From contig OZ037773.1 of NCBI GenBank assembly GCA_964035545.1, positions 3,129,751-3,193,750 on the forward strand: a DNA stretch of 64,000 nt, written 5' to 3'. This document shows, in pieces, positions 35,801-61,820 of this stretch; position 1 is the first letter of the stretch; each line of letters starts with the position of its first letter. The position numbers and the translations under genes are program-made. This DNA comes from Bugula neritina. Taxonomy: Eukaryota > Animalia > Bryozoa. The notes beneath the pieces were generated by a model, which had not been told where the DNA came from, searched no databases, and was given only the letters and a program-made list of their open reading frames with translations.

Positions 35801-36083
35801 TATAAATGTACGGAAAGTGAAGGGCTAATGATACTCACATGGTGATTTGATGGTAGCAGTTTGTTCAGTGTTTTCTCCCTTCCAGTTAGAATGTTCTGTA
35901 TCTGTAGAAGATAATGTTAGTCCAGCTCTATAAACTTAACATTATTACAACACAATGTAAGTTTAACCTTACAATATTTTTTGCAATATGGCAACATTGT
36001 TAAGCAATGTTCTACTGTTTATACGTATTTTTAAATAACTGGATGCATATATCACAGTAACACAGAGACAGAATGTTTTATAT

Positions 36084-38151
36084 GGCCTCGACCGAGGAGC
36101 AGGCTCTTGAGGGCGTCACCCAACATTCTGTTGTTCCGCTCGGCGACTCCGTTCCCTTGCGGGTGATATGGGGTGGTCCGACTCTGGTTCACCTCCCATA
36201 TCCGGCAGAGGTCTCCCATGAGCTGGGACTGGAACTGGGCACCCTGGTCTGTATGTATCTATTCAGGTGACCCGAGGTAGCAGAATACATTTTGCTCCAG
36301 GGCCTGGGCCACCGTGCGGGCCGATGCGTCTGGAATAGCCAGAGCATCTGCCTACCGGGTGAAGTAGTCCGTGAGCACCAGTATCCAGGTGTTCCCTCTG
36401 GCATAGGCATAGGCCCAACGAGGTCTACCGCCACTACTTGCCACAGTCGACCAGCGTATAGCCAGCGTCGACCATTGGTTTCCGTGGGGCGGCGATGCTT
36501 ACTAGCTTGGCAGATCTCGCACTGCCGTACCCGCAGTCGTACATCCCGAGTCATTCCGGGCCAATACCAACGCAGCCGCATGCACCTGATGACCCGACTG
36601 GCTTCAGCATGAGCCTGTTTATGGGTGTCCCAAATCAGTTCCCGTCGGAGGGCGCGTGGACAGATGACGCGGTCCCTCTCCTGCTGACGGTTGTCTGCGG
36701 CTAACGTCATCATCGGAAGACCATCTAGACTGACCTTGAGGGAATCTCAGCAACAACAGAAAAGTTGGACCTCCCTGCCGCTGCTGTTCCTCGCTAGGTT
36801 GTCAGCCCTCCTTCTTGGCCCGGAATATGTCCGCTACTGCCCCTGGTAGCGTCTCCTGGAGTCGGCACAGATCCTTGACATTCTGGTACAGAGTGGGGTT
36901 AGCACGAAGTGCCTGGATGTCCTCAGAGTGGGTTTCGGTCCGAAGATGGCCGTGCTCCCACTGATAGACGGCGCCCTCCCCTAACTCCGTTTCCACGTCA
37001 AGGCGAGCGGGTCCCCTGTCCGGTCTCTATATGCAGGCATTGCTTGCAGTCCTCTACCGGCCGACGATTCATGCCGTCGGCGTTCCCGTGCTTCCAGCCA
37101 GCACGGTGCTCTATCCGGTAAGAGAACGCGGCAAATATCTCCAGCCAACGAGCTACCTGGCTTGAGGGCTCCGCACGTTTACACAGCCATATCAGTGACG
37201 CATGGTCTGTTCGCAATCGGAACGTTCTCCCATACAGATATGGTCGAAAGTGCTTGACCGCCTTGACTACTGCTAGGAGCTCCTTCCTAGTGGTGCAATA
37301 GTTCTTCTCGGCAGCCGCGAGAGTCTTGCTATAGTAAGCTACAACCACCTCACTTCCACCCTGGACTTGGGACAGAACAGCTCCCACATTGTGGTCACTG
37401 GCGTCTGTGTCCAGGATGTACTCCTTGGCTGGGTCAGGATACGCCAGAATTGGCGCCTCCATTAGCCGTTGCTTGAGGTGGTCAAACGCCTGCTGCTCCT
37501 CCTGTGCCCACTGCTACCGGACCCCCTTGGCAGTCAGCCGATTTAACGGCTGAGCCATCCCTGCAAAGCCAGGTTTGTACTGCCGGTAGTGCCCTACTAG
37601 GCCCAGGAATGCACGCAACTCAGGGAGATCGCGGGGGACAGCCCACTTCTTCACAGCCTGTACTTTCTCTGAGTCAGTAGCGACCCTATCACGGCCAACA
37701 ACGTGGCCCAGGTACGTAACCTTCGGCTGTAAGAGTGCACACTTGAAAGGCTTCAGCTTCAGTCCAGCTGCCCGAAGACGGTCAAAGACCTCCCGCAGAC
37801 GACTGACATGAGTCGCAAAGTTGGGAGATTACAATGACGTCGTCCAGATAGATCAGAAGGGTCTTCCAGTGTAAACCACTGAAGACCTGCTCCATGAGTT
37901 GTTGGAAAGTTGCCGGGGCAGACGTAAGCTCGAATGGCAGTACTTTTCACTTTCAGAGCCCATCACGAGTAATGAATGCTGCTTTGTCCTGAGCATCAGG
38001 GCTGAGGGGCACTTGTCAGTATCCGCTAAGTAGATCCAAAGTACTAAAGTACTTGCTACCCGCGAGGGCATCCAGAGACTTATCTATCCGTGGGAGAGGG
38101 TAGGCGTCCTGGATGGTAACGCTGTTGAGTTTGCGTTAGTCCAACACAGAA
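36084..38151 (-). mobile_element. pol: Degenerate Ty3/Gypsy pol fragment (RT, RNase H, integrase)
   Basis: DAYPLPRID, IYLDDVI, YLGHVVG, APILAYPD..ILDTDASD..GAVLSQ..YCTTRKELLAVV..LRTDH, H..AH..WYWPGM..CEICQ and TTPYHPQGNGVAERNNR; many frameshifts; GC-rich; no LTR seen. Confidence 0.92.
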
Positions 38152-38467
38152 CTCAGATTAGTATAACCAGATGCTTCAAATGTGAAAGTTATCTTCTCAT
38201 CTTTATGGAAATCTGGTGAACTTGTAGTACTGTAGCCTATCTCTGTAGAAGGCTGTGCTGGAGATATATTATAATACTCTAAGTTACGCACTACTTTATA
38301 TTACTTGTAATTATTTTCTATTTGAAGGAGCCGATATCACCTTGCTGTAGCGTTATGTTTGATAGACACAGAAAGATGGTAAGATGCTGCAAAAACAGAG
38401 TGCTGCAGAAAGCTGCCATCAAGCCTCAAGCATATGTAGAACAGTCATTGTAAAATCTACCGACTAC

Positions 38468-38863
<396 letters not shown>

Positions 38864-40259
38864 ACAATACCAATATAATTATGCTGTTGAAGGTAAATTA
38901 TTTCGTGATTTTAAAATATTTGCATTGTGTTATCAGATTCAATAAAAAAAACTATTGCAAACGCTAGTTGGTAAATATTGATAACCTTCTACACATCCTA
39001 CAAAAAGAGTTTTAAATCTAGAGCCGGAAAATTATGAAACAATATATTATATAATAAGGCAATCAGCATATAAATTGCTACCTATAGCAATGAGCACTGA
39101 TTTGCTATAATACTGCTTGCCAATATATACAACCATTATAATGTATACAAATTATAATTATATTAAATTGTAATAATATAGATCGAGTATAGAACAATTG
39201 TTACCTGCAGCGTAGATAGATAAGCAGACCAAACAATACAGGAAGTGGTAGTAGCACATCATCTCACTATAACATAGTACACATAGTAATTACAATTTTA
39301 CAATAATTTCATAGTTTATGATATTTTTTCATTTTATTTAAATATTTTAAGTTAGTTTTGAATATCATTCCCTTCATTTAGTTTTTTAACTGCTGATTGC
39401 TAACATCATAATTCAAGTATATAACTTAACTCTATATTCTATCAATAAATTATATTCACAATACAAATAACGGTTGCAGCAAAAAAGTTCCCAGTGTAAT
39501 TTACTATTCTAACTACTCTAACTTAAGAGTCATATGTATATTTGTCAATTCTGAAGTTTTCAAAAACACTAATTTCTATAAATAGATTTTTCTCTAGCAG
39601 TGAATTTGCGGTAAATATACAAAACTAATTGTACGTGAATGCAGGGAGGATATAACTTCTATTACCTTCAGTTTATTTCTGCATACATATATTATCAGTA
39701 TGTGACAAGTATTTATTAATTGCCATTGTTAAATTGAAGTGTGTCAACTAAACTACTTCCAACTATAGAACTGATGCTGTTATAAGCACATATATGGTTT
39801 TATAACAATAATTAGCAACAAGTTCAATATAAGATCGCTCATAGAGACTTTACTTATAGGTAACATTGTAGTATGTTGAATAAATTGAATTTTTTTTAAT
39901 CCAAAAGACGATTCTATATTTCTTTGTATCCTAATGTTGAAACGAAATAGTACAGTATATTCAATAAAGAAATCTCAGGAAGCGATATTATATTAGGGTA
40001 TAGGGGCACACGGGTGTATTTTAGCAAACGAAAATATGCACCACAAGTAAAAAAAGTTTTTACTGTACATAATTATGCCCATGTCAGATTACAGTCAAAA
40101 CCCAACTGTGAACGCGTTTTTGAGACTGAGCGTTGCACTCTGTGACGTCACAACTGTCTGATTTCTGAACGCCACTGTCAATTTTTTATGATGCATTCAG
40201 CATTTGATATGTCAAATGCTTAATTTTTGCGCTTAGTGATCATTCATTTACTGACTTGA

Positions 40260-43200
40260 TTAGGAGGATTAACTGGGGCGCGCGCGCCCATCGTTCATAG
40301 CTTCTAACCGGTTTACTTTCCTCCGCAGTGAGAATAAACCCTTCGTACACTGCTGCAATCGCCTGTGTAGCCGATGGACTTTATCCTCATGAGTGCAGGA
40401 TTGGGAAAAAATGTTGCAGGGAGGGAGGTAAAATTGGTTGGGCGAGGAATGGTATGTGGAGTTTAGGGGAAAGTGCTGATGAGTCGGGAAGTAGTGTTGG
40501 AGGATCGTGAGGTAGGGTTAGTGCTAGAGGGTTGGGAGTTAATGGTTGACGTTCAGGAGATAGTACTGGAAAGTCGAGAGGGTCGGGGTCTTTTCCGTAT
40601 TAGGGAAACTTGAGTGGGGTCCAGCACAGGGTTGTTGTTTACTCTGACCAGCACAACCTAAAGAGGTTGGGTGGCTACTGGCTGGCTGGCTGTCGTGAAT
40701 TCCTTGACATCTGTGTCCTCTCTCACTAGGGACACGTCAAAAACCCCTGGATGAGAGCTGCTCGCTTGCGGGGTCCCCGAGGTGGGGCATGATGAGGTCG
40801 CGGAACTCCGGGAATGTGGTTTCATCAACCACAAATGTCCTACCCACTTGGCAATGAGCTATGCGCTGGTGGCGCAGCACATAGTCCCGCTGGTAGGAGT
40901 ACTCCCCACACTGGCAAAAGACATTGGCATAGTGTTAGGGGCAAGAACCCTCAGTCGCCGAACAATGGAAAAAAAATTTTCTGCATTGGCGACACTTGAG
41001 ATTGCCCGTTTCACCACGCGCTCTGCCAATTCAGAGCCAGGCTTCTTTTGTGATTCAGTGTTGATAGGTGGCCACCATTTTAGGCAGCCTCCATCCATGG
41101 ACGTTTTTGCCAATCTGTACCGCTCCGCCGTCCAAGATAACCTGCTCTTTCTTCGCAGGTAGTTGTACTTCTTTGGGTTTTGAAATAGGCTCCACTAGAG
41201 TGACAGGATGTTGCTCATCAAGTTTGGGGGAATCCTACAGGCCGGTGGCAGCTGAACCAGGGTTTCTAGTGAAAAAGGGGCCGAGCTGACTCGCCCCGGT
41301 TTCAGTAAAGTCTGTCAGATTATCTGGAACAGTAAAGACAGGCTGTGACTGTCCGATTGTACTACTGCCGAAATTTGGCATTTGCCTATACAGTGCTCTA
41401 ACAGCCAGAATTTCAGGTAAATTTAAGATTGCTGCCAACCCCATGTCCTGATTCGACAAGTTGTCCAAGGAAGATTCGTCTCCTAATTTCATGTGGAATT
41501 CTATAAGTAGGGTGGTTTCAACCCAATTGATTAAAGAAGATTGATTAAAAGTTGGGCTAAACTCCGAGAATGGAGAGTCAAGTCTTAAAAAAATACCTGA
41601 CTGATCGTGGTTGTCCGACGTTTCTGGTAAAGTTATTCCCATTTTATATTGTTGAGGAGTTGAAATTGTGCGTCTCTTTGCGACTGAAGTAAGAGTTAAA
41701 ATGATTAAACCTTGTGGCGTCAGATTTTCATATGACAACCCTTCGGTCACATGCTCGGTCAGTTTCTCTGACGATCTTCAGTAGGGTAACTTTACATGTT
41801 GGACCTCTTCCAATTTTTGGCCCGCGTTTTCAACTCTCTCAAGAGAACCTTTCCATCTTATGAGGCGTTTGTCCACGTGAAGGTCAAAGTATATACCTGT
41901 ACCAAGTGCACAACTCTTTGGTAGGGGTGTTCCCATGTACCCCACGTAGTAATCAGCCAGATATCCTGAGAATTTCCTGCTTTTTTGCTGTCTCTCCAAG
42001 TTGATAGACACTGGTGCATCAGCTTTTCTGGTGGTTTTGGCAAAGGGAGGTGTTTCACCATTGTTCTCTCCAGTCGTGGAGACATCTTCTACCTCTGGGG
42101 CCGCTGAGATTGGCCCTGGGGCTAGCTGACCTAAGGATCTAGAAGAAAGAGGAGGGTCAGGTGTTTTGTCAGGTGTACTGTCAGGCTCATCAGGATCACA
42201 AACAATTATTTCCCACTCTCTAGGTCAGGCTACCCATCCTCTGGACATGGGCCAACAGGTTGGCTCCAGGAGCGGGGATGCTTGGCCTGTAGCCTCCGGG
42301 CTACTATAGTATAGTTTTAACCGTTGCTCGTTCTGAACCAAAATTTTTGTCTTGAGTGTTTCATGCAATATGTGTGGTTGGGTAAGACCTCCACTAGACA
42401 GGAGGGCCCCATGAACTTGGGCTGCAGTTTAGCCAACTGTCTGCAACGCCTACGGTAGCTAACCATTCATACCCAGTATCCTACATGTATAAGGGGAGTT
42501 CTTCTGAGTCCTCCGTTCTCACTCTCCACTGTTTTTTTCAGAGAGCATTGTAAACCTCCTCCATAGTATTTATCAACTTCCCTACATACTCGTGTACTGG
42601 GGACTTGGGTGCTAGAACGTAGTAGTTTAGGTGTTCTGGAACCCGGGTCTCTCGATCAAGCATCAAGAGGTTTGAGGTCTCCTGTGTGCTAGAGTGTAAT
42701 GTGCTACAGTAGGCCCCCATGATTTGAGACAACACCACATCCTTTTCCTCTTGACTCCGGCCTAAGATCAGGCTTCTGAGGGCGTCACCTAACATACGAT
42801 TGTTCCTTTCCACAACTCCGTTCTCTTGCGTGTGGTATGGGGTAGTCTGATTATGGTTCACCCCCGTATCTGGCAAAGGTCTTCCATTAGTTAAGACTAG
42901 AACTAGGCACCCTGGTCAAAGTGGGTCTGTTCGAGTAGTCCAAAGCAGCAGAACACACTCTGATCCAAAGCTCGAGCCACTGTAGGAGCTGATGCATATG
43001 TGATATCCAAGGCAACTGCCCAACGAGTGAAGTGGTCCGTGGGCACCAGTATCCAGTTGTTCCTTTGGCGAATAACAGCATTGGTCTGACTAGGTCAAAT
43101 ACTACTACCTGCCACGGTCGACCAGCGTACAGCTAACGCCGACCGGTGGTTTACTTAGGGCGGCCATGCTTGCTAGCCTGACAGACCTCGCACTGCCGCA

Positions 43201-44320
43201 TCCGCAGTTGCACATCTCGAGTCAATCCGGGCCGGTACCAATAAAGCTGTAGACACCTGATGACCCGAATGGCTCCAGAATAGGCCTGTTTATGGGTGTC
43301 TGACATCAACTCCTATCAGAGAGTGTGTGGACATACGACGTGTTCCTTTTTCTGGTGACGGTTGCCTGCTGCCAATGGTATAGTAAGAAGGCCATCTGAG
43401 TTAACCTTGAGAGAATCTCAGCTGCGACAGAAATGTCGGAACTCGACATTACACTGCTGCTTCTGCTTTCCAGTAAGTCGGTGACCCTTCTTCTTAAACC
43501 AGAATATGTCAGCTACTGCCCCTGATAGTGTCTCCTGGAGCCGGTACAATTTCTTGACGTTTTGGTACAAAGTGGAGTTGGCCCGGAGAGCATTGACGGT
43601 GTCTGATTGGGTTTCGAGTCGAAAATGACCATCCTCCCAACTATTGACGTCACTGCCCCAACTTTTCCTTTACGTCCAGGTGAGCGAGTCTCCCCCTCTC
43701 GTCTCTCAATGTGCCAGCGCTGCTTACAGTCCTCCCCGGGCCGGCAGCTCATGTCATCAGCATTCCCATGCTTTTTCCCAGCACAGTGTTCTATTCGGTA
43801 AAAAACTCAACAAGGATCTCCAGCCAGTGAGCTACCTAACTGGAAGGCTTAGCACGTTTGCACAGCTATATCATTGATGTATGGTCAGTTCTCAACCTGT
43901 ATGCTCTTCTATACAGATATGGCCGGAAGTGCTTGATTGCTTTGACTACTGCTAGGAGCTCTTTTCTGATGGTGCAGTAGCTTTTCTCAGCACTCGACAG
44001 AGTCTTGCTGTAGTAAGCCATTACCACCTCTGTTCCACTCTGGACCTGGTGCAGGACAGCCCCCACACTGTGGTCACTAGTGTCAGTGTCCAAGATGTAC
44101 TTTTCAGATGTGTCAAAATACGCCAAGATAGGCACCTCCATTAGCCAATTCTTGAGGTGGTCGAAGGCCTGCTGCTCCTCCTGTGTCCACTGCCATCAAA
44201 CTCCCTTGGCGGTTAGCCAATTCAAAGGCTGAGCCACTCCTGCAAGCCCTTGTATATACTGCCTATAGTACCCTACCAGGCTCAGGAATGCCGGCAAATC
44301 AAAGAGGTCTGGGGGGGGAC
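40260..44320 (-). mobile_element. pol: Second degenerate Ty3/Gypsy fragment (RNase H, integrase, extended 3' region)
   Basis: VPILAYFD..ILDTDTSD..RKELLAVVKAIKHFRPYL, TTPYHTQENGVVERNNRMLGDAL and the pol-end motif RKFSGYLADYYV. It is related to, but diverged from, 36084-38151, and lies in a ~4.6-kb insert (~39995-44590) absent from the paralogous upstream regions. Confidence 0.85.
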
Positions 44321-46089
44321 AGTTTATAGTTCAGTTTCAACTGTGGTCTGACAGCTTTGAAATTTCGTAATTTGCTAAACATGTAAAATGTGTTTGTTTG
44401 TAATTTGTAGCACTAAAGAAAAATGGGTTTGCTAAATAAGCCAGCCAATTAAATAATTATGACAGAAAATATTCGAACTTGTTGTTCAGCAATCTCAACG
44501 CATGAACTTCGTGTACAGTATGCACACATTTTTTACTTGAGCTGCAAATTTTTGTTTGGGAAAATATGCAAGCTGTGGCTTCATGCTTAGACTTTTGATT
44601 GCTTGGGCTATCTAAACAAATAGCATGTGCGTGACTCCTTCACTAGAAGTTTCACACATGCTTTAATAACACTAGTTGTTATCACACATGCTTTCCGGCA
44701 AACTGCCTTAAAAAGTTTGATTAATCTGTAAATACTATAACCAATCTTTTTATAAATTGTAGGCTGTTTATAATTTTTTATATAACCCACATAGTTTTTT
44801 TCTTATCACTTCAGCTCTACAAGAAGTACTAAATCTATATAGATTGTTAGATATGATAAAGCAGCATTCAGTGAAATAAAGCTCCGCCACAAAGCCGTAT
44901 ATATTATAGTATTTGTAGTATTTTATGTACTTACATATATATTCACCAGATTTGGTATTGAAACAGTAAAATTTGGAGGTAAAGTAGTTGGCTACAAGAG
45001 TCAGTATAACTCATCTTTATAACAAACTTATCAACTGTGAACTGTATAATGAATCTACCGTTTTAGTACCACATAGTGTAGTTACTATAATATATACTTT
45101 TTGGTTTGGATACTATTATATAATAATAATTATTCCTACTATAATTAGTAGTGTTTTATACTCACAATGTTTCTTGTCAACTTAGTATCAATTTGCTGAC
45201 CTTTGACTTACATCACATATTCTAAAGCTGTATGAGAAACATAATATCTGCTGCTTGGGGCTATAAAGAGAAATTTAATTTCAATATCCCATCTTTAAAC
45301 GCAACCCACATTCTTATACACTTATAGTAGAGTGAAAACTAGTCTTTGCTAAAACTAAACAAATTAATACAATGGCATGAGACTATCAAAACTATCCTGA
45401 AGTTTCTATTGGCTATAATCAGAGTGTATTGTTAACTGAACAATGTACATATTGAATAGACATACTTAACTTCCTTGTTGCTTGGCTATATACAGTGTTA
45501 GCTAGTATTTACAGAATAGTACTAACTACTGTACACTTTAAAAGAATGGATAACTCTGATAACTATGCATATTATAATACGTTCACTGCAACAAATTAGG
45601 GAATTAGTCTGTCTTGGCCTAAAAGTTGTTAAATCATTTGCAATATCACTTTTCATAAAGTGATGAATCTTAGAACAAATGTTGGTAAGTGTTTTTATAA
45701 AAGCATGAAATAGTTTATGGTATTATATATGTAATGTAATAGGTATATGCGCAGTTAAAATGTTCTTGGTAAACAACATTGGAAAACAACTTGATCCTAG
45801 TTTATTAATAGTTATTGTTAGATTCTGCAGGACTGTTTTAAGAAGTGCAACTTTGAAACCATTGAGTGTGCAGCTATAGAAGGTGAAATAACAACAATCT
45901 TTAAACAAGCTTAGGCTATATTGATGCGAATATATGTACAAAGAATTTTGATTTTTCCATAAAAATTTTTTTTGAGTAAAATGCACTTTTTAGACATCAT
46001 GACAAATCCATGAGCCTATTAAGAGTTGAATGATAAGGTTACAGGTTATGATAGATATTCTCACGTATACAACATATTAGGTTTTTGTA

Positions 46090-46680
46090 TCAGTTACAGT
46101 GAGTTGTACAGAAAGAGTGAACCCTTCTGGTTGGAATTACATTCTGCATGACTGACTCCAGTTCCTTTTATTCCAGAGACAGCAATAATGTCTGGAAATA
46201 ATGAAGCAACCCATACCTTTCACTTTCACTACCTGGAATACATCCAGTGCTGTAGATTGTACTGTCTCCATTACCTTCAGATCGTAACCGTAAAAATCTC
46301 AGATTAGTATAACCAGATGCTTCACCTGTGAAAGTTATCTTCTCATCTTTATAGTAATCTGGGGAAGTTCTAGTACTGTAGTCTATCTCTGTTATAGATG
46401 GCTGTCCTGGAGATATCTTATAATACTTCAATTGTTACACAATACCTCTAATACTGTGCACCGATGTATTTTCAAAATAGTTCGCCTATAACATGTAAAA
46501 AAAAATTTATGCAAAAAGGATAATTATATAGACCTTATTGTATACCTGTTACCTGATTTCAAGACATGGTAACAGGTAACGGTAAATGATATGGACCAAT
46601 TAAAAGCAAGTTTTACTTGATGTATTGGTAGATAAGTAGATTAGACAACACTGCGCAAGAAGTAGTAGCATCTCGATCAT
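46090..46680 (-). pseudogene. Leader exon plus a truncated, frameshifted V-like exon
   Basis: Leader 46617-46680 (MIEMLLLLAQCCLIYLSTNTS). V exon 46406 to ~46090 has Cys->Gly, the same -1 frameshift (ERYGLLHYFQT) as 31592-32005, and a truncation at a duplication junction. Confidence 0.82.
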
Positions 46681-48133: not shown

Positions 48134-51100
48134 CTATGGCTTCATGTTGACATAAATTGATGTGATTGGTATCTCATAACCATCCTGATCTTCTGAATGG
48201 GAGACTCTAATCTGATTCATGCCATATCTTTGGGAGTTGTCAATACACTCATAGTTATGGTCTGCAGTTCTAGTGACTGACAACTCCTCATATGTAGAGG
48301 GAACTATGGTAGTTGGAGTCTGTGGTGTTTTTCCTTAACAGAAGATTATTAATATATGATGAATATTATAGTTAGTTAGTTGATCATATATATATCACTA
48401 TTAGGAACTAAGTAGAAGCTAAGTAGAAATGGTTGATTGAGTATATAATGTCTCCTAATTGCCAATGAAACACTAAACTAAAATTCAAAAACTTGTGGGT
48501 CTTAGTTCAATTATTGTAAGATAGTTTTATAATAAGCTACTGTATATTAGCATATTTAAACAGTATGACATATATATGCACAAAAGTGTCCATCAGTTTG
48601 AAATATATTGAAGTATTGAATTTAAATTAAGTTTATTGCAAAATTAGAATCCAAGCTGTTGTTATGACTGCATACTGCCAATCACAAGCTGCTGAGCTGT
48701 TTGCTGACTTTAATATAGTTTATTAAAGTATGTGTTTTACAAGTGTACGTAGCATATAACATTTACCTTTTGACTTTCGTATGTAGATGGCAACTGCAAC
48801 TGTAATAGTTATCAACACTCCACTCAGAGTACCAATGATCCCCCCTATTAGACCTCCATTATTCAATAGTTTCTTCGTAGATGTAGCTGGCAGCGTTGTG
48901 GATATTGTGGCAGCATCATCCCATGTTATGTTCCACTTTATGGCAACTGTCTTTGCTGAAACACATTAAAAAATTGAATCCTTGTTTAGAGAAATGTACT
49001 CGAGTACAAGCTTTCATGCAAAATAATTATAAATCACTGTTATAGCTGTTATCCAATTGCAAGAATGTAGTAAATTTATTACAACTAAGGCAATAGCTGA
49101 ACACAAATGATAAATATTTTCTATTAAAGCACATACATAAACCATTTTCAGCTGTACATGAAGCTGTTTCTGTCACACCATTCTTTTGAGAACCCAGAGT
49201 CAGCTCATTAGATGTTTCTGTTGACACAACTCCATTATATGTCCAAGTGAAGGTAGAGGGTGGTGGGTTAGCATCCACATGTTGGCTACACTCTAGTTTA
49301 GCATCAGATTGTTCAGGGTTGAACTCTTTCACAATTGGATCTTGAACACCAGGTTTTGTAGCCAAGTCTACAGAACATAAACATATTATCAGTCTTAAGG
49401 TAAAAAGGTATACCAATGAATTTATAATAATATGTGAATATACATTTCCGTATGCATATGCTTATAACACTCACACTGTGGTGTGATGGTAGCAGTTTGT
49501 ACAGTGTTTCCTCCTCTCCACTTAGAATGTTCTGTATCTGCACAGGATAAAGTTAGTTCAGCTCTGTCTGTCTCAGTAGGAGTATATCTGCCAGCCACAG
49601 TGTTACCATTTACTTCTGAATATTAAAATATATTTGCTCGTGTCAAGCAATGATACTGAAGAACAACAAAGTATCTGCTCCTATGTTCACAAACTTATCA
49701 GTATTACAGCATAACCTCATGAGTTTTATGATCTTATAATCACATTCGCAAGATGACAACATTGCTAAGCAATATATGTTCTACCGTATTAATTAAATTA
49801 TTAAAAAAGTTTGTAAGTTCCAAAGAAGTTAAGTCTAAATTTATAAAAACTCAATTTTATCCTTATAATGACATTCACGTTAAGATTACACAATTAGACA
49901 CAAAATTTTGTAACTTCCCAAGGAGTTGAGTCTATATTTATAAAAATAGCGGCTCTAGAAAGTTAACTTTATTTTTAGATTAAATTGACACCCAAAACTA
50001 TGAACCTAAAAATAATTGTTTTTATTTTTTAAAGTAAAAAGACTGAAAACTAATTACACTCATTTAGTATTATTAGAAAATTGTCTTTCTGTCACAGTCA
50101 CACACAAATGTAATTTTATTTTGAAGTACAGCAAATATCTTCTGCTTTTTACAATGCAAAGAAAACTATATAATTTATAGCTTATAACTAGATAGAAAAT
50201 TATGGAACACTTTTTTCAATTTTATTTATAGTTAAACAGTTCTATAATACTCACTGTATTCATAGACTGACACAGGATCTGCTCCTGTAGAGTTACAATC
50301 AAAACTGAACTCTTCTCTTTCTATGATAGTTGCTGGTTTATTGAGTGATATACCAGTCGGAGCCACTGTTGAATAAAAATGTAAGTAATAATTTAAATTT
50401 AATGCATGCCTCCCGGAAATAAACGAGATATACTCCAAAATCATAGTTTGATGGTTAAAACTATAACAAAAGTCAACGCTGTTAATTTTAATTTTAGCCA
50501 TGGAAAAACATAAACTAGTTATGAAAATGTCATATACATGTAAAGCATTTGTATAAAATACTATAAAGCATAGATATAGTTTTGTTTAGGGCCTAATTAT
50601 ATACTCGGAAAATATTTATGATGCATACGAAATAAGCATCAGTGGGGAGCAGCCGTGGTCTAGGGGTTAAAGGGTTTGCCTAGTAAACACGAAGGTCATG
50701 GGTTCGAGCCCTGACAAAGGCCATTGGTGATGTTAGGAAGAGCATCCAGTCATAATTGCTCCTGTGCCTCATTTAAATAAGTCCTTAGCCCGCTTTAACA
50801 AAAACCCTTTCTATCAGGGGTTTCTCACAGGGATAGCGACTATAATAAACTTGCGTGAGTTTTTTTTATATACCAAATAAGCGTCAGTATTGTCATCAAC
50901 CATCACCTATAATACCATATATGGCAACAGTTGAATTCCACAATAGAAGTAAGCTGCGTTCTACAGAGCTCTACTGAAGTTAGCTAAAGTGACATCAGAA
51001 GACAATCAGTCATCATAATATTGAAACGGAATAATTAATTTTAAGAATTTACCTTTGACTTCCATTGAAACTTCTGAGGAGAGATATTCTCCCACACCTC

Positions 51101-51859
51101 CTCCTTCAAACCCTCTACAGTAGAATTTCCCTCTGAGTGATGAATCAGTTGCAGTGAGTTGTACAGAAAGAGCAAATCCTTCAGGTTTACCAACTGAGTT
51201 ACAGTCTGCATGGTTGACTCCAGGTCCTTCTATTCCAGAGACAGTAGTAATATTTGGTGTTGATACACTAATCCATACTGTGTCATCCTCAGGATTTGGA
51301 ACACATCCACTTTGATAAATTGTACTGTCTCCATCAGCTTCATATCGTAACTGTAAAGTTCTCAGATCAGTATAACCAGATGCTTCACATGTGAAAGTTA
51401 TCTTCTCATCTTTATAGAAATCTGGTGAAGTTGTAGTACTGTAGTCTATCTCTGTAGATGGCTGTGCTGAAGATGCAAGATAATATGTAATACTGCAAGT
51501 TGCACACTACCATTATAATAGTGTGTATACCAATTTATATAACGCCTAAACGAAAAATTAAAGAATATAATAAATGTTGATTACTATAATAATTAATTTA
51601 AGATGCATATATGCAGTCATGAAGTTCATCTCTGTTATAGATTCCTGTGCTGTAAATAAATTATAGACGTCCAGTTTGCACAATACCTTTATCCCTGTAT
51701 ATATGGCTGTACTAGAAAAACCTTATATGGAACATGGAAGCAATATATAATTATTACATTATATAATATAGTTATAAAGCATTATATAGAACAATTGTTA
51801 CCTGCAACGTGGATAGATAAGCAGACCAGACAATACAGGAAGTGGTAGTAGCACATCAT
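48134..51859 (-). CDS. Ig-superfamily-like type I receptor 'D', 447 aa, with an ITAM-like tail
   Basis: Exons 51802-51859, 51053-51466, 50255-50365, 49475-49615, 49137-49367, 48767-48955 and 48134-48333 total 1344 nt, are all GT-AG phase 1 and contain no internal stop. [26 protein letters not shown]; tail [31 protein letters not shown]. Confidence 0.88.
50645..50867 (+). mobile_element. tRNA-derived SINE in an intron of receptor D
   Basis: A box TGGTCTAGGGG, B box GGTTCGAGCCC, T-rich tail, target-site duplication aaataagc(a/g)tcagt; absent from the paralogous intron at ~61030. Confidence 0.85.
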
Positions 51860-52933
51860 CTCACTACAATATAGCATTAGGTTTTTTATTCTTTTTATAT
51901 TTTATAACAGTATTTAATGTTGTATAGAAGTTTAGGTTATTTATACTGATGTATCTAATAAAACTGTGTAAAATTGATTCTATGTTATTATGCTATATTT
52001 TCAGTTTCCGATTGAAATTAGAGTATATTAATTTAAGTACAATCCAAGTCTATTATAGTTTATGGGTAAGTCGCAATACAAATAGGTGCTGTTTAAACCA
52101 AAAATTTCAGAGCAAACGTTACTAATATCCTAAACGCCGTAGCGTAAAAGTCATATGCATAGGTTCTAGCTCTCTAAAGTTTCTCAAAGGTAAACTAATT
52201 CTTATAAATATATCCCTTTCTAGCAGTAAAGACACATGCATTACATGCATGAAATAATTTGTATATGAATGCAGAGAGAATATAACTATGACATCTTCAG
52301 TTTATTTCCACATACACCATTTATCAATATATAACATTTAAGAATTGCCATTATGAATTTTAAGTGTCAACTAAAATGTTTTCTACTAAATAACTGAAAC
52401 CTTTAGCATACAATAATATAGCATTATATAAGCAATAGTCAAAAGCAAGTCCAATATTACTACTCCAGGAACTATACTATAACCTGTACAATGTGGTATA
52501 TTATGTGGTATATATAATATGATTTCATTATCTACAAAAAATTTCGTGTTTTTCTTTGTATTGAATTATCTTACGACTGAATAGTATTCAATGAAGAAAT
52601 CTTAGTCAGTGATACTATGTTAAACTTTTTATGGTGCTTAGGGTATCTAAACAAGAGCCATGTGTAACATTTTTTAAGTAGAAATTTGAGCAATACTCTA
52701 ATAACATGCATATGGAATTATTAGCATGTGCTGCATGTCAGTCAACCTACCTTAGAAACTTTGATTACTCTGTCAGTACTAACCAAGTCTACTAGAAATT
52801 ATATGTATTGCGTTATACTTGCATATTTTTTTCCTAATATTATCTCTGCTCTATAAAATAGTAAAGCTACGGGCTTTATAGATATGATAAAGCAGCATGT
52901 GCTTTTAAATAAAGCTCTGTTGTATACGTATAA

Positions 52934-53172
52934 TACTTGTATAGTACTTGTATAGTGCTTGTAATATGCTTGTATAGTGCTTGTATAGTGCTTGTATAGT
53001 GCTTGTATAGTGCTTGTATAGTGCTTGTATAGTGCTTGTATAGTGCTTGTATAGTGCTTGTATAGTGCTTGTATAGTGCTTGTATAGTGCTTGTATAGTG
53101 CTTGTATAGTGCTTGTATAGTACTTGTATATAGTACTTGTATATAGTACTTGTATATAGTACTTGTATATAG
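52934..53172. repeat. 11-bp minisatellite (tgcttgtatag)n, ~20 copies
   Basis: Direct reading; the paralogous site at ~62950 has a single tacttgtata unit. Confidence 0.93.
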
Positions 53173-54449
53173 TGTTTGATACTTACATAAATTTGCCAGA
53201 TTTGTATTGAACCATGCAGTAACAGTTGGCAGTAAAGAAGTCAGTTTCAGTATAACTAGTCCCTATCAAACCTATCAACTCAATAATAAATTGACACTAA
53301 CTATAATGTCATGGAGAGTTACTACTGAATACTTCCTGGTTCTCATACTAATTCACAATTATAGTTGACAATATAACAGGAAAATCTAATAGCTCTTATC
53401 TTATTAACTAATAAGCTTATTAATGTAGCATATGAAATGAGAATAACTGTTTTGTGGAATACATTACCAGCTGTTATAATGACAGGGTTCATATATTATT
53501 AATATACATTGTATAAGTAATATAGCTATTATAGTAGCAGTTGTAAACTATGCTTCCTTTTCGTTACTGTACACAATCACCATAGGCTTTATATAATAAG
53601 ATTGTATAGTTGTTGCAAACCCTAGTTGTTATTTGAATTAATTTTCCTTACAGTGAAACTAGTATTACACCACATACCACAAGCACCACTTCATATAACA
53701 TGAGCAGAATGCTGTTTTTGGAGTGTCAACATTTGGAAGTTATCTGTTCACTGATGGAAGCAACAAGTATTTTAATATCAGTAAACTAGTTGATATTCTA
53801 AGCTATAATATGATAACTCAATATATCTTGTTTATGTGTTGGCTTCTCCTACTCATTGGATTCACTCTTTGTTTAATATATGAAGCAAAACAATATTATG
53901 GTAAAAAAAGTGCTCATAATCCTATTTATAACAATTAGCTGTCGCATTTAAGTCCTCATATATAGCTATTTATAAATATGATATTATTTAGTTATATTTT
54001 ATTATCGATATACTATATATAACATAAATTCATATAATTTGTACAAAATATCAATGTTCAACATGTCATGTCTAGTATAATAATATGATATATCATGTCA
54101 TTATATAATGTGTTAATACATAACAATATATGACATACAAGTATATAACATACCAGTATAATTATCAACTATTCCTACTATAATAGATAGTATTTTATAC
54201 GAACGTTGTTTCTTGTCAATTCAGTAAAACATACTAAGAAACAAGATTTATTAACCTTGATTACACTATTTTAGTGTCAATTTGCTGACTTTTAACTTAC
54301 ATCACATATTCCAAAGTTTTCTGTGAAACATAATATCTGCTGCTTGGGGCTATAAAAAGAAATTCAATTTTAATAACTCATTTTTAAAGCATAACTCACA
54401 TTCCTATACACTTATGTAGTATAGAGTGAGAACTAGTCTTTACTAAAAC

Positions 54450-54572
54450 ATCATCCAGTCATAATTGCCCCTGTGCCTTATTTAAAAAAAAATCCTTAGC
54501 TTTAACAAAAACCCTTCTACCAGGGGTTTCTCACAGGGATATAATGCCTATAAACTTGAGTGAGTTTTTTTA
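54450..54572 (+). mobile_element. 5'-truncated copy of the SINE
   Basis: catccagtcataattgc...ggggtttctcacagggat...aaacttgagtgagtttttt matches the SINE 3' half. Confidence 0.8.
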
Positions 54573-55695
54573 TATATATGTAAATGAATATGGAGATGGT
54601 GGATATAGTTTTTAAGAGAGGAGAATATGGGGCAGAGATAAATTCTATTTGTCAATTTCAATGACTCATTTTTTAAAGCATAACCCACATTCCTATAAAC
54701 TTATATTATAGTAGAGTGAGAACTAGTCTTTACTAAAACTAAACAATACACTAACACAAGACTATCAATTATGTCTTGAAGTTTTTATTGGCTATAATCA
54801 GTGTGCATTGCTTGTCTATGTTAAGTAATCAATATACATATTGAATACACATACTCAGCTTTCTTGTTGCTTAACTATAGCTAGTATTTGTGAAATTATA
54901 CTAAGAACTATTGTACACTGAGAAAGGAAGCATAACTCCAATAAATATTGCAAAGAATAAGGGGAACAGTCTGTGTAGGGCCTATAGGCATATAACTTGT
55001 AGTCGAGTAAGTTTTTGCAAAAACATTTTCATAAAGTAAAACATTAATGAAAACATATAGTGGTGAATTTTCATGATATAATGAGATATTTAATAAAAGT
55101 ATGCAACATATAAACAGTTAAATTTTTTTGGTGAACAATAATAAAAATAAGAGTAGCTTGATTTTAGATTAATAATAATTGATGCTAGACTCTGCGAGGT
55201 TATTTTAAGAAATGTATTTTTAAAAGCCTTAGTCTAAGCTTTGTAAATGCTTAAGTATGCTTAAATATTTTTAATGAGTAAAAAAGATGCCTTTTATTAT
55301 ACATCATGACAAATCAGTAAGTCCATGGAGCTAGTGTGATAGAGTTACAGTAGGTGATGAAAGATATTATCACTTGTACAAGTTTATGAGGTTCTGCAAT
55401 GAAATATGATTATATAATACTTAAAACTATAATAGAGCATAACTCAAACACAACTGAGTATGTATTGCATTCTGGAGTTTGACTTGAAAAAAGCTGATAA
55501 AGCATCATCTGTTATATAATTATTTCAAAAGTATTATCATATGATTATTATAAATTAAATGAGTTGATTGTCAGATGTCACTTGGTGTAAGAGTGACTTT
55601 GTTTGGATGAGTGATATTATCAGCTGGGAAAATAAATTTAAAATAAAAAAGAGGTACAAGCCTTATATCAGTAACAGTATATAAGTAAATGAATA

Positions 55696-55913
55696 GGGAG
55701 CAGCTGTGGTCTAGGGGTTAGAGCGTTTGCCTTGTGAACCCAAGGTTATGGGGTCGAGCTCGGACAAAGGCCATTGGTGATGTTAGGAAGAGCATCCAGT
55801 CATAATTGCTCCTGTGCCTTATATATTTAAAAAAATCCTTAGCTTTCACAAAAACCCTTTTGTCCTGGGGTTTCTCACAGGGATAATGACTATAAACTTG
55901 CGTGAGTATTTTT
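55696..55913 (+). mobile_element. tRNA-derived SINE, full copy
   Basis: Same family as 50645; flanked by the duplication tataagtaaat(g/a)aata. Confidence 0.85.
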
Positions 55914-56798
55914 ATATATAAGTAAATAAATATGGAGATGGTGGATATAGTTTTGAAGAGAGGAGAATATGGGGCAGAGATAAATTCTATTTGTCATAAA
56001 TAAGTTAAGATTGGGTGCATGATAAACTTTGGGTTTTCGAACTGAAAAGAACTTCTATCAAACTATTATATTCTAATTGGTATTATACTTCTAAAGATTT
56101 TATTACATAACCAACTTTATATATATAATTTAGAAACTATCGGATATCATACAATGAGTCATTACATAGATATAGAATAATAACTACTAAATTATTAGGC
56201 ATTTAATTATCTTAAAACAGTTCTTTTCAGCTGATGATGTCTGTCATGTTTGCTTTCTGAGTATTTCTAAAAAGTGTGTATCCGCAATACAAGTTATTGG
56301 GATAATGTGACAACCTGAATAAAAGCTTAAAATGAGTTCAAAACAAATGCTACAATTGAATAAATACATGGAAAATTTCCTACAAAAGAATCTAATAAAA
56401 GCAAGCTAGCATCGAAGCCAAATTTATACTAAATTTGATTATATCAGTTATATATATATCATTATAATGTATGTGTTACTGTCCTATATAATGTTTATAT
56501 TAACGTACAATAAACAACATATTCAATATACAGCTGCACATGAGTGTAGCAAAATTTGGTAAATTGAAAGTAAAACAGTTTGAAGATATGACATGCCTGC
56601 ATATGTTAGAACTGACTCAACGTTGTTCTGCCTATAATATTTACCAAATATTTAATTTCTTGTTGAATATAAAAGTTCCCATTATTGTTGCCTACAATTC
56701 ATAGTAATAGTATTAAAATATTTCATTGCAGTTAATAAAAATATATTAATGGAAAACATTTATAATAATATAGTGCTGGCTACAGTAATAATGTTTAT

Positions 56799-58035
56799 CT
56801 AGCTTTTGATGTTGACATAAGTTTGTCCAGAGTGTGCCTCATAGTTATCTGTATTATCTGTTTGTCTTTGAGATACATCAAGTGAGTCATAGTTGTGATC
56901 ATCTATTCTAGTGGCACGCATCTCTGTGTATGTGGAGTTATCAGTCTTAGCAGCGGACATATCTGTGTATGGGGAGTTATCAGTCCTAGTGACAGACATA
57001 TCTGTGTATGGGGAGTTATCAGTCCTAGTAGTAGACATCTCTGTGTATGGGGAGTTATCAGTTCTAGTGACAGACATTTCTATGTATGGGGAATTATCAG
57101 TCTTGGTGACAGACAACTCTGTGTACAGGGAGTTATCATTCCTAGTGACAGATAACTCTGTGTATGGGGAGTTGTCAGTCCCAGTTCCAGCCTGTGACCT
57201 AATTCCTTAAAGAAAACAAGACAAGCCAGTTTTATTTTGCAACAACTTTTTGGATTGCGACTTCAAGTGTGATTGTTATATATATAAATATAGTGAAATC
57301 ATTATTTCATTCCACAATTTTATCAACCAATAACACCTTTTAGTTTTCCAAGATGAAATGCTACTCCAGCTGTGATGATAAGTAATAGACAACCACCAGC
57401 TAATCCTCCTCCCAGAGCAGCTTTGTCTATGCTCGCACATGGTGGTCTTTCAGAAAGAGTCGTGATTGGGATTGTGCTTGGTAGAATGATAGAACTATCC
57501 CACTTTATTTTCCATGTAATAATAACCGATTTAGCTGCATAATAAAGAACAATGTTGCTAATAAAGCAGATCTTTCAATAACACTATTAAAAATTTCCGA
57601 TAACAAATAGTCTCTGATCTTCATAATTAATACCATAGTTAAGTTAACTCTCTAATAAACTGAATGACATGATTATTGAAAATAAGGTGCCAAACTTTAA
57701 AGTAAGTGCATGCATTAGTTGTCACCTAGAGTGGTGAAATTTAAATAATTTCTTACATAAACCATTTCCAGCTGCGCATGAAACTGTGTCTGTTAAACCA
57801 TCTGTTTGAGAATTCAGACCCAGCTCATCAGCTGATCCTATGATCAAAGCTTCATTATATGTCCAAGTGAAGGTTGAGAGTGGTGGATTAGCATCTACAT
57901 GTTGACTACACTTTAGTTTAACATCAGATTGACCTGGGTTGTACTCTTTCGTGATTGGATCTTGAACACCTGGTTTTCTAGCCAAATCTGCAGTGCACCA
58001 ATATGAAAATGTTGAAATTAATAAGTATATCAGGC

Positions 58036-58104
<69 letters not shown>

Positions 58105-61100
58105 TGATCTTTAATTTCATTTACTTGTACTAAAAGTGAAGGGTCTATATGACACTCACACTGTGGTGTGATAGTAACATTTCTTTCAGTGTTTCCTCCC
58201 TTCCAGTTAGAATGTTCTCTATCTGTACAGGATAAACTTAGTCTAACTCTGTTTGCCTCAGCAGGAGTATACTTTCCAGCCACTGTGTTCCCATTCACTT
58301 CTGTACATGAATATATATGTTTAAGTCAAACATCAACATTGGTTAGAAGAATATCAAAAAAAAAGTATTTGGTTCTAAGTTTAAAACTTTCTCAACATAA
58401 CGACATAATATGACCCTAATATGTCACTATTATATATAAGCATTTACAAGATGACAACATTGTTCAATAATGCTATATCCTGTATACACCTATTTGTATT
58501 CTCAGCTTTCTGCTACATAAATAAAGAATCTACAATCATGCATTAGTTTTATTCAGTAAGATGGAGTGAGTCGGAAAAAATAAGTATGAATCCTATTTGC
58601 ATATATATAGAACTATACTCACTGTATTCATAGACTGACACAGGATCTGCTCCTGTAGATTTACAATCAAAGGTAAACTCTTCTCCTTCTATGATAGTTT
58701 CTGGTACATTTAGAAATATATCAGTTGGAGCAGCTGTTGAATGAAAATAAGACATGCAAAATATATTTTAAGTTGAGGAGTCAAATAAAGTAAGAGCACT
58801 TGCTAATACTTTAACTTAATGTCTTGGCTTATATGTGATATAGATATGAAAAATGTCAAGTGAGATAGAAGCATTCAAAACATTATACTTTTCTCCTTCT
58901 GTAATAGTTTTTGATTTCCTGAGGTTAATAAGCTGCAACCACAGTTTTAATAGAAACGCATTCATAAACTGAAAATAAACATTCGGTTTACAGAAATATT
59001 TCCAATAAAGTTGTTTTACTCATTAAAGTTCTTAATTTTTAATTAAAATACACAAAAATCTAACTAACATGGCAGCATGCTAAATGCTTAAAAATAAAAC
59101 TTATTTAAACTATTATGGTAGCAATTGGATCCCACAGCATATATAGAGATGAATGACATGTTTTAAAAGCTGAAGTTCATTGAAGTTGCATCTAAAAATT
59201 ATGGTCTGCCAACATAATATTGAAATACAAAGATTCACTTTAAAGAGGTTACCTTTCACTTCCATTGAAACTTTTGAGGAAAGAATTTCTCCCACGCCTC
59301 CTCCTTCGAATCCTCTACAGTAGAACTTCCCTTTGAGTGTTGAATCAGTTATAGTAAGTTGTACAGAAAGAATGAACCTTTCAGGTTTACCAACTGAGTT
59401 ACAGTATGCATCACTGACTCCAGGTCCTTCTATTCCAGAGACAGTAATAATATCTGGAGTTGATGAACCCTCCCACACTGCGTCATACTCAATACTAGCA
59501 GCACATCCACTTCTGTAGATTGTACTGTCTCCATCAGCTTCATAATGTAACCGTAAGGTTATCAGATCAGTATAACCAGATGCTTCACATGTGAAAGTTA
59601 TCTTCTCGTCTTTATAGAAATCTGGTGAGCTTGTAGTACTGTAGTCTATCTCTGTAGATGGCTGTGCTATATATAGATGTATAGTAACAGCCCAGGTTAC
59701 AAAATACATCTAATACTGTGTGCCAATATATATATAGTCAAAAACGTCTGGTTGTAAAAAATTACTTAACGAATAATAACAAAAGTGTATACAAACTGCA
59801 TATACCAAATTTTGAGAATATGAACCAATTGTAAACCAATTGCACTCCATTAAAGGACATGACAGTGAGAATAAAATATTTAACAAGCAGTCTTTACTTA
59901 TTCCTACTTATTCATACTTATTCATATCTTAACTTTTTCATATGAATGTTCATAACACTAACACTGTGGTATAATAGCAGCAGTTCGTTCAGTGTTTCCT
60001 CCCTTCCAGTTAGAATGTTCTGTATCCGAACAGGATAAAGTTAGTCCAGCTCTGTCTGTCTCAGTAGGAGTATACTTACCAGCCACTGTGTTACCATTTA
60101 CTTCTGAATATTAAAACATATCTGTTTTTGCCAAGTTATGATGGTAAAGAACAACAGATGATCTGTTCCTATATGTTTATAAACTTATCAATATTACAAC
60201 ACAACCTCATAATTTTTATTATACTCCTATATATAATCCCATTATAGCAATATGACTTGTAAATTGCTATAAGCAATGCTCTACCAGTTACACAAAATTT
60301 TGAAACTTCTCAAAGAGTTAAGTCTAACTTTGTAAAAATAACAACTCTAAAAACTTAACTCTTTTTTTAGAAGAAGCTGACACCTAAAACTCTAGATTTA
60401 CAAATAACTGTTTTAAATTTATAAAATAAAAAGTATGAAAAATAATTACACTCATGTAGTATTATTAGATAATTGTATTTATATATGTCACAGTCACATA
60501 CAAACGTAATTTATTTCATATTACATGTAGCAAATATTTTATGATTTTTACTATATGCAAAGAAAAGCTATTAATTTATAGTTTACTAGGTAGAAAGTCA
60601 TGGAACACATGTTTGAATTTTAATTAATTAAACACTTCTATATATATACTCACTGTATTCATAGACTGACACAGGATCTGCTCCTGTAGAGTTACAATCA
60701 AAAGTGAATTCTTCTCCTTCTATGATATTTTCTGGTTTATTGAGTGATATACCAGTTGGAGCCACTGTTGAATAAAATCGCAAATATTAATTTAAATTTA
60801 ATGCATGCCTCCCAGAAATTAACGGGATATATAATCCAAAATTTAATTTGAGAGTATAGAACTATATAGCAAAAATCAATGCTGAAATTTTTAATTTCAC
60901 CCATGAAATTACACACATTAATTAGCTATGAAAGTGTCAAATATAGCATTATTATAAAATGCTAAGCAGATAGTTTTGTTTAGGACCTATAATAGTAATA
61001 TACTCGAAAAATATTTATGGTGCATACTGAGTAAATTTTAGTGATGCCATCAACCATCACCTATCATGGCAATAGATGAATAGAAGTTTAATCTGTGTTG

Positions 61101-61820
61101 TATAATATAGAGCTTTACTAAAGTTAGTTACAGTGAAACAAAAAAGACAACCAGTTATGCTATAATAATTTTGAAATAGAATAATTTATTTTTAAGATAT
61201 TACCTTTGACTTCCATTGAAACTTCTGAAGAAAGAATTTCTCCCACACCTCCTTCAAATCCTCTACAGTAGAACTTTCCTTTGAGTGATGAATCAGTTAT
61301 AGTGAGTTGTACAGAAAGAGTGAACCCTTCAGGTTTACCAACTGAGTTACAGTATGCATTACTGACTTCAGGTCCTTCTATTCCAGAGACAGTAATAATA
61401 TCTGGAGATGGTGCACTTTCCCATACTGTGTCATCCTCAGCACTTCTACTACATCCACTTCTGTAGACTGTACTGTCTCTGTCAGCTTCATATCGTAGCT
61501 GTAAGGATCTCAGATTAGTATAACCAGATGCTTCACATGTGAAAATTATCTTCTCATCTTTATAAAAATCTGGTGAAGTTGTAGTACTGTAGTCTATCTC
61601 TGTAGATGGTTGTGCTATAAGAAAAATATATAACATATAAAACTCTAAGATCCCCAATATGTACGTACTTTATGATACTGTGCACCAATATATTTTGCAA
61701 TCCTTAAAGTTCTGTGTATCCAAATTATATATAATATAGTTGAAGCATAAAACAATTGTTACCTGTAGTGTAGATAGATATATAGACCAGACAATACAGG
61801 AAGTGGTAGTAGCACATCAT
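56799..61820 (-). CDS. Ig-superfamily-like type I receptor 'E', 740 aa: SP-V-C2-V-C2-I-TM-tyrosine-repeat tail
   Basis: Exons 61763-61820, 61204-61614, 60654-60764, 59963-60103, 59253-59666, 58623-58733, 58160-58300, 57757-57987, 57337-57534 and 56799-57205 total 2223 nt, are all phase 1 and are open. Confidence 0.85.
56907..57179 (-). repeat. Coding 39-bp minisatellite, 7 copies of TDNSPYT(E/D)(L/M)SVTR
   Basis: Seen directly in the tail exon of receptor E. Confidence 0.93.

Follow-up and report, generated by a model that had tools for sequence, protein, structure and literature searches.

V-like exons and receptor genes D and E

The 64,000-nucleotide (nt) stretch of the bryozoan Bugula neritina analyzed here (contig OZ037773.1 of assembly GCA_964035545.1, positions 3,129,751 to 3,193,750; hereafter the window) holds a cluster of exons that encode a V-like immunoglobulin (Ig) domain, some of them in genes laid out as type-I receptors. 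A preliminary description of this DNA had counted 13 V exons and quoted stretches of their translations; searching the whole window with exon E1 as query (blastn and tblastn), we recovered exactly 13 copies, all on the minus strand, and every quoted peptide is present as written. The V-like exon is 411-414 nt long, is bounded by an AG acceptor and a GT donor, and is flanked on both sides by phase-1 introns, which is the layout usual for Ig-domain exons. Six copies in the window are fully intact, namely E1, E2, D, and the array members A3, A5, and A6. Residues of the V-like domain are numbered throughout from the Q of QPSTEI. The DNA of the window is AT-rich, with 26-33% GC except in a GC-rich retrotransposon.

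Gene models were built by tblastn with neighboring exons and by inspection of the flanks. They predict that the V-like exon encodes the membrane-distal domain of type-I receptors, in the order leader, V, Ig2 (two exons), Ig3, transmembrane (TM) segment, and a tail with tyrosine motifs. The features of the two genes are listed below:

61763-61820, minus: leader (signal-peptide) exon of gene E, 58 nt, ending in phase 1 at GTAAC
61204-61614, minus: V-like exon E1 (137 codons, phase 1/1), the first of the domain exons in gene E (blastn/tblastn; AlphaFold2 predicted local distance difference test (pLDDT) 90.6; V-set matches)
61397-61450, minus: variable segment of E1, residues 55-72 (SRSAEDDTVWESAPSPDI)
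59952-60771, minus: Ig2 domain of the E1 module, two exons at about 60771-60649 and 60101-59961
59253-59666, minus: V-like exon E2, the second V of gene E, without a leader of its own and preceded by the Ig2 exons of E1 (blastn/tblastn)
59449-59502, minus: variable segment of E2, residues 55-72
57725-58740, minus: Ig2 (two exons) and Ig3 exons of the E2 module
57335-57421, minus: TM segment of gene E
56802-57182, minus: cytoplasmic tail of gene E, in which SPYT[ED]M units recur (39-bp repeat) and YVNI stands at the end
51802-51859, minus: leader exon of gene D, a homolog of the E leader
51053-51466, minus: V-like exon of gene D (blastn/tblastn)
51249-51302, minus: variable segment of D, residues 55-72
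48140-50372, minus: Ig2, Ig3, TM, and tail exons of gene D

Gene D follows the simple order of leader, V, Ig2 (two exons), Ig3, TM (48857-48780), and tail, and its Ig3 gives a weak Pfam Ig_3 match. Gene E (56802-61820) reads as one leader, V(E1), Ig2, V(E2), Ig2, Ig3, TM, and tail, so that two V-Ig2 modules stand in tandem behind a single leader exon. Because the exon ends that were checked (leader, V, and Ig2b) are all in phase 1, V(E1)-Ig2-V(E2) is in frame, and both a five-domain product and single-V products are therefore possible: gene E could encode a V-Ig2-V-Ig2-Ig3 ectodomain or use its V exons alternatively. The Ig2b exon of the E1 module has the donor GTTAGT, with a stop just within the intron.

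In the tails of both genes (56802-57182 and 48140-48298, minus), an in-frame 39-bp repeat makes up the SPYT[ED]M units, which are followed by a terminal YVNI or YVNM. Motifs of this YxxM/YxN type resemble the docking motifs of PI3K/Grb2-type SH2 domains and do not have the spacing of classical immunoreceptor tyrosine-based inhibitory or activation motifs (ITIM/ITAM); judged by these motifs, the receptor tail may signal through SH2 proteins. The Ig3 domains at 57755-57985, 49135-49365, 35487-35717, and 1152-1382 have a variable patch of their own after a conserved W-x-Y-N motif, and the overall dN (non-synonymous divergence) of Ig3 exceeds that of the framework of the V domain.

Among the sequencing runs of the region, none is recorded as RNA. 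Contigs from two other runs align to exon-like parts alone, with a mismatch of 4-6% and loose ends that resemble intron. We read them as paralogous or allelic DNA and not as transcripts, which makes them uninformative on expression. One run covers the whole of 58400-61800, whereas the two other runs, from the same labeled organism, contain only 3% of the 31-mers of the region and match that stretch at ≥93% identity only in exon-like parts. Such sparse coverage could reflect deep haplotype divergence, presence/absence at the locus, a cryptic sister species, or another library type.

Predicted fold, cysteines, and relatives of the V-like domain

An AlphaFold2 model of the domain, built on 19 family sequences, has a pLDDT of 90.6 and a predicted template-modeling score of 0.86. 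Its strands (assigned with DSSP) lie at residues 5-10, 21-29, 34-43, 49-56, and 64-66, followed by a helix at 85-91 and strands at 98-105, 111-120, and 124-135, giving the order A, B, C, C', C'', helix, E, F, G. Every top Foldseek match in the PDB is a V-set domain (VHH, CD8a, T-cell receptor (TCR) V; template-modeling scores 0.55-0.61). An exhaustive VIA search aligned 105-117 residues with Z scores of 10.6-8.8 and root-mean-square deviations of 2.7-3.4 to TCR V, single-chain Fv, CD8, nectin-3 D1, and MPZ, and a shape search of the ESM Atlas returned CD200-, PD-1-, and nectin-like V-sets as neighbors. As modeled, the V-like domain is thus a non-canonical V-set Ig beta-sandwich, and its designation as an atypical V domain in the preliminary description stands. 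At the level of sequence profiles, a Pfam scan of three V copies matched no family at E ≤ 1, the V-set, ig, and I-set profiles included. Positions 12-39 of the family profile (A'-B, S-x-P-x-F-Y-x-x-E-x-I-T-F-T-C-x-A-S-G) have a sub-threshold likeness to framework 1 of antibody light chains (best E 0.007), which is the only sequence-level trace of Ig ancestry that we saw.

The domain has four cysteines (26, 54, 88, and 116) and, as had been described, lacks the canonical tryptophan of strand C. Cys26 lies mid-strand B and Cys116 mid-strand F, family-wide at the canonical V-set B-F positions, where they would form the usual disulfide. Strand C' terminates in Cys54, and the short helix that precedes strand E contains Cys88; these two would pair as well, as a second candidate disulfide. 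A weak HMMER alignment had placed Cys88 as the canonical F-strand cysteine, an assignment we rejected because the high-confidence model has Cys116 in strand F. No copy carries a Trp in strand C (34-43), where a nearly invariant Leu39 stands instead, and the conserved Trp of the domain is Trp64, in C''. Compared with the tyrosine-corner motif of V-sets (D-x-G/A-x-Y-x-C, up to the F-strand Cys), Phe114 is at Cys-2 and Tyr115 directly precedes Cys116, and a conserved Asp107 is found 9, not 6, residues before Cys116.

These features set out both the likeness to vertebrate V-sets and the distance from them. The bryozoan domain shares with TCR V, CD8, nectin D1, CD200, and PD-1 the fold, the strand order including C' and C'', the cysteines in B and F (Z 9-10.6 over ~110 residues), and an aromatic residue at position Cys-2 in strand F. 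Unlike them, it has no strand-C Trp, no Pfam V-set match, and an identity of only 6-13%; the turn that leads into F is longer by 3 residues, an irregular stretch plus a 7-residue helix takes the place of the D region, and Cys54-Cys88 is an extra candidate disulfide.

An exhaustive profile search over 1.84 billion representatives gave 37 matches, the true ones being short contig open reading frames (ORFs) and two Watersipora subatra RefSeq proteins (XP_067939872 and XP_067939839) with V-like, Ig_3, and TM parts. The wider V-like family spans 23-38% identity. In a set of 17 sequences reaching down to 23% identity and including the two Watersipora proteins, C26, C54, and C88 never vary, and C116, W64, and L39 are kept in ≥90%. 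Homologous ORFs also occur in Joint Genome Institute (JGI) samples whose contigs bear the name AY690838. Six mitogenome papers on bryozoans and lophophorates cite this accession, most often the description of the Bugula neritina mitogenome, for which we take it. These Bugula-associated contigs have the same V, Ig2, Ig3 order, and their V exons are 86-90% identical to E1, as close as the paralogs within the window. By these searches, the receptor family is apparently confined to bryozoans.

Several other matches, bacterial repeat proteins among them, were set aside. The long matches P0035 (YDG repeats) and P0039 (ankyrin, in a Wolbachia cluster) were discarded as chance, as was P0048, which has no Ig-like family match, and P0043 and P0044 were treated likewise, the matched stretches being only 28 and 33 residues in long proteins. 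Unnamed mollusc clusters from a feature search of the ESM Atlas fell below the trust threshold for recognition, the true relatives being bryozoan. A protein-pattern scan and an exact DNA-pattern scan of metagenome contigs gave no matches.

Variability and selection in the loop between Cys54 and Cys88

To describe how the domain varies, we aligned 15 intact V exons, seven from the window and eight from Bugula-associated metagenome contigs. The preliminary description had pointed to a hypervariable segment of about 18 residues after the second Cys, and residues 55-72 are indeed the most variable 18-residue window of the alignment (permutation p = 0.002 for the maximum window), with a mean pairwise amino-acid difference of 0.51 compared with 0.28 elsewhere. 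Among E1, E2, and D alone, the corresponding values are 0.52 and 0.13, so that the segment is hypervariable in the sense of varying 1.8 to 4 times as much as the rest of the domain. The least variable blocks are residues 13-30 and 91-96, and inside 55-72 itself, E59, D61, W64, P70, and I72 are conserved. Within the array, residues 55-72 are not the most variable part. The segment spans the end of C', the C'-C'' loop, C'', and the following stretch; it begins at the position equivalent to complementarity-determining region 2 (CDR2) and lies between Cys54 and Cys88, which agrees with its description as a CDR-like segment within a second Cys pair.

Selection was examined with our own likelihood code for the GY94-F3x4 codon model, which on the same tree arrives at the likelihood that iqtree2 gives under GY+F3X4 (-2794.28), applied to the 15 sequences or to 11 non-array sequences (L002 kept); M7/M8 were fitted with scaled M1a branch lengths. 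By the Nei-Gojobori method, dN/dS (omega) of residues 55-72 is 1.1 (1.5 for E1, E2, and D), compared with 0.33-0.61 for the rest. The dN of the segment is 2.5-5.7 times that of the rest and, among E1, E2, and D, reaches 0.36-0.44, the highest anywhere in the ectodomain. Synonymous divergence (dS), which could have been equally raised in the segment, was not: it is only ~1.3-1.4-fold higher by Nei-Gojobori, and the maximum-likelihood (ML) multiplier of the synonymous rate is 1.17 (not significant) for 55-72 and 0.74-0.87 (not significant) for 55-87. Over the whole Cys54-Cys88 loop (55-87), ML omega is 0.92-1.05 compared with 0.47-0.48 elsewhere (p 0.005-0.008); in sliding windows, the ratio of non-synonymous to synonymous differences per site (pN/pS) is at least ~0.9 over residues 41 to 95 and 0.1-0.4 at both ends.

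Site models add a class of codons with omega above 1. M2a was preferred to M1a for the 15 sequences (likelihood-ratio test statistic (LRT) 16.5, p 2.6e-4; 6% of codons at omega 3.4), and for the 11 non-array sequences (LRT 21.0, p 2.7e-5; 26.6 and 19.1 on third-position and protein trees), and over all data sets and trees p ranged from 3e-4 to 2e-6, with ~6-9% of codons at omega ~3. M7/M8 gave an LRT of 24.5 and M8a/M8 an LRT of 12.7. Sites 49, 55, and 56 have posteriors of 0.95-1.0 in every run; weaker candidates are 36, 40, 58, 89, 98, 110, and 127. In a per-site test of the fixed-effects-likelihood type, p was 0.003-0.006 at site 49 and 0.007-0.014 at site 55. The site models reject neutral or purifying change alone, and 49, 55, and 56 rank highest; of residues 55-72, therefore, only the first are involved. 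The diversifying selection that had been proposed for the segment consequently survives in part: an omega > 1 class that includes codons 55 and 56 is found by M1a/M2a, M7/M8, and M8a/M8, on three alternative trees and without the array copies, whereas for 55-72 as a unit neither the ML nor the Nei-Gojobori omega is distinguishable from 1, and at the level of the segment the proposal is refuted on the terms set for it (dN/dS ≤ 1).

Taking these results together, we regard it as fairly probable that the V-like domain belongs to a family of bryozoan type-I receptors in which the loop 55-87 is the least constrained part, a few codons are under selection for change, and the region forms a plausible recognition surface. 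In the mechanism that we propose, the Cys54-Cys88 pair would enclose a C'-C''-D excursion built around the almost invariant Trp64. The enclosed loop is the least constrained part of the domain, its excess change is non-synonymous, and as a block it behaves in a neutral-like way; positive selection is detected at only a few codons: 49 at the start of C', 55 and 56 right after Cys54, and more weakly 36 and 40 in strand C and 89 after Cys88. In this reading, the selected residues would sit on the exposed C/C'/C'C'' side, where they might contact a ligand, either microbial or conspecific.

Several points weigh against this reading:

(i) The ML omega of residues 55-72 is 0.83-0.96, not different from 1 (p 0.53-0.67), and a single omega with a 1.63-fold faster overall rate in the segment fits almost as well (p 0.14).

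(ii) The single-site p-values would fail correction for ~136 codons, and the posteriors are naive empirical Bayes, not Bayes empirical Bayes, values from 11-15 paralogous exons, possibly of two species.

(iii) Only three of nine candidate sites lie inside 55-72. Of the others, 36 and 40 belong to strand C, 49 opens C', 89 adjoins Cys88, and two are at 110 and 127; with 49 at one end of strand C' and 55-56 at the other, these sites make no obviously compact patch.

(iv) The ectodomain exons all evolve fast, with an omega of 0.49 in V, 0.44 and 0.48 in the two exons of Ig2, and 0.57 in Ig3, and the whole receptor family is therefore weakly constrained.

One alternative is a neutral, structurally permissive C'-C''-D loop, in the part of an Ig sandwich most tolerant of change, that drifts at omega ~1 in a rapidly duplicating, partly pseudogenized family, the omega > 1 calls being statistical noise or paralog artifacts. 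It would explain why the omega of the segment or loop (0.83-1.05) is never significantly above 1, and it sits well with the variable patch that Ig3 of the same genes has in the equivalent region at its domain omega of 0.57, with an array in which half of the copies are broken and A6 and A8 have no Trp64, and with the lack of expression evidence in the runs searched. Yet M1a, despite its neutral class, was rejected for all data sets and trees tried, and M8a is rejected too. The same copies, moreover, are under strong purifying selection at flanking codons and at E59, D61, W64, and P70, and codons 55 and 58, which encode 5-6 amino acids each, vary at positions 1 and 2 while the third base is T in all 15 copies. 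We therefore consider pure drift of the loop possible but doubtful.

Orphan array, known recognition systems, and the rest of the cluster

The remaining V-like copies of the window lie away from genes D and E:

46086-46405, minus: partial V pseudo-exon, with a 1-nt deletion in common with A1
38149-38257, minus: V-exon stub in which V homology stops after 109 nt, adjoining a long-terminal-repeat retrotransposon insertion
28181-32005, minus: orphan tandem array of eight V-like exons, A1-A8 (Tandem Repeats Finder (TRF), blastn/tblastn)

TRF reports the array with period 487 and 7.8 copies, in units of ~493 bp that form a two-unit higher-order repeat of ~985 bp, with spacers of 76-80 nt that keep the AG/GT splice sites. 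Using tblastn with neighboring receptor exons, we found no constant exons downstream of the array on its strand. Half of the units are broken, and only A3, A5, and A6 of the eight are intact. A 1-nt deletion disrupts A1; A2 carries insertions of +2 and +4 together with a Cys26-to-Arg change; A4 is interrupted by a TGA and by 2 inserted nt; A7 starts with 7 extra nt; and A8 is without its 3' end. A6 and A8 have also lost Trp64, which is otherwise kept family-wide. The array variants that had been cited as evidence of diversification come largely from broken or Trp64-less copies, and the variation among array copies arises mainly from decay and gene conversion, not selection. A1 and the pseudo-exon at 46405-46086 share, besides their deletion, ~570 nt of upstream flank at 76% identity.

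A further alternative is a gene-conversion mosaic, in which tandem copies homogenize their conserved flanks but not the central patch, or exchange that patch as one block; the center would then look hypervariable, and the site tests would be inflated. With array copies included, the pairwise homoplasy index (PHI) test for recombination is significant (p < 0.0005), and the array is a young two-unit higher-order repeat. The proportion of synonymous differences is 0.05-0.13 in residues 17-33 and 71-95 compared with ~0.2-0.3 elsewhere, and contigs of other runs combine E1-like and E2-like flanks around another central stretch of 38 nt. Among the 10 non-array copies (L002 also omitted), however, PHI finds no recombination signal (p 0.39), support for M2a rises in the non-array set of 11 sequences, which is closely similar, and the synonymous rate of the loop is not raised. 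As the source of the pattern in the loop, such a mosaic seems improbable to us.

The described system nearest to this receptor family is the Alr family of Hydractinia (Huene et al. 2022, PMC9546547), in which an allorecognition role has been demonstrated for Alr1/2. Both are clusters of lineage-restricted type-I receptors of the immunoglobulin superfamily (IgSF) in a colonial invertebrate, with an N-terminal domain that is V-set by predicted structure and mostly missed by Pfam, Ig domains below it, tails with tyrosine motifs, and numerous pseudogenes; in many Alr models C'' is followed by a short additional helix (PMC9546547), as it is in the bryozoan domain. Domain 1 of Alr proteins lacks both canonical cysteines and usually the Trp (PMC9546547), whereas the bryozoan domain keeps the B-F cysteines and adds a second Cys pair and the conserved Trp64 in C''. 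No cnidarian protein is among the 37 profile matches, and homology to Alr was not detected by this profile search, no direct comparison with Alr sequences having been made.

Two further sets of receptors bear on the comparison. Receptors of the CD28/CTLA-4 type are single-domain dimers whose V-set has a second intradomain disulfide between C' and D and whose tail carries a YxxM motif. The Cys54-Cys88 pair and the SPYT[ED]M and YVN[IM] motifs of the tail resemble these features, which we take as a lead only, and the rank order of sequence or structure matches (VIA search) showed no preference for CD28/CTLA-4. The VCBP of amphioxus, the FREP of snails, and fester/FuHC of Botryllus are lineage-specific multigene or polymorphic IgSF members with a variable patch in the N-terminal Ig domain; their architectures are different, with chitin-binding or fibrinogen domains and secreted forms, and the searches run here detected no homology to them.

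Bryozoan colonies fuse with or reject one another, and bryozoan larvae recognize kin. We found no paper on bryozoan IgSF receptors or on the molecular basis of recognition in Bryozoa, and a lineage-restricted V-type receptor family with putative signaling tails offers concrete candidate genes for it. If the fastest-evolving, partly positively selected part of the domain does lie at a CDR2-like position held by a candidate extra disulfide, it also names specific residues to examine. The family would be a further example, after Hydractinia Alr, of V-set domains missed by sequence profiles, and would bear on the age and spread of V-type recognition domains; if the loop is merely unconstrained, what remains is an ordinary fast-evolving paralog family. 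A bolder proposal is that the cluster is a bryozoan complex for self/non-self recognition (allorecognition or larval kin recognition) or for immune recognition, convergent with the allorecognition complex (ARC) of Hydractinia, with the C/C'/CDR2-like side carrying specificity and the orphan array serving as a donor reservoir for gene conversion or as an alternative V-exon cassette. We offer it as speculation to which we would give only a small chance. The one hint of the extreme allelic polymorphism, segregating with fusion/rejection or kin recognition, that such a locus should have is the sparse, exon-like coverage by the two other runs described above.

The cluster extends beyond these genes. 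A third receptor gene is interrupted by a GC-rich Ty3/gypsy-like element; this retrotransposon (46-56% GC) occupies ~36000-44200, possibly as two nested copies, and carries reverse transcriptase, RNase H, and integrase-like ORFs on the minus strand. An (AG)197 microsatellite at 38468-38860 adjoins the V-exon stub. On the plus strand, a receptor gene with Ig2, Ig3, and tail enters from the start of the window (394-2559), and isolated Ig2b/Ig3 fragments lie near 24.3 kb (24240-24634); with receptor exons on the plus strand, the cluster therefore has inverted members.

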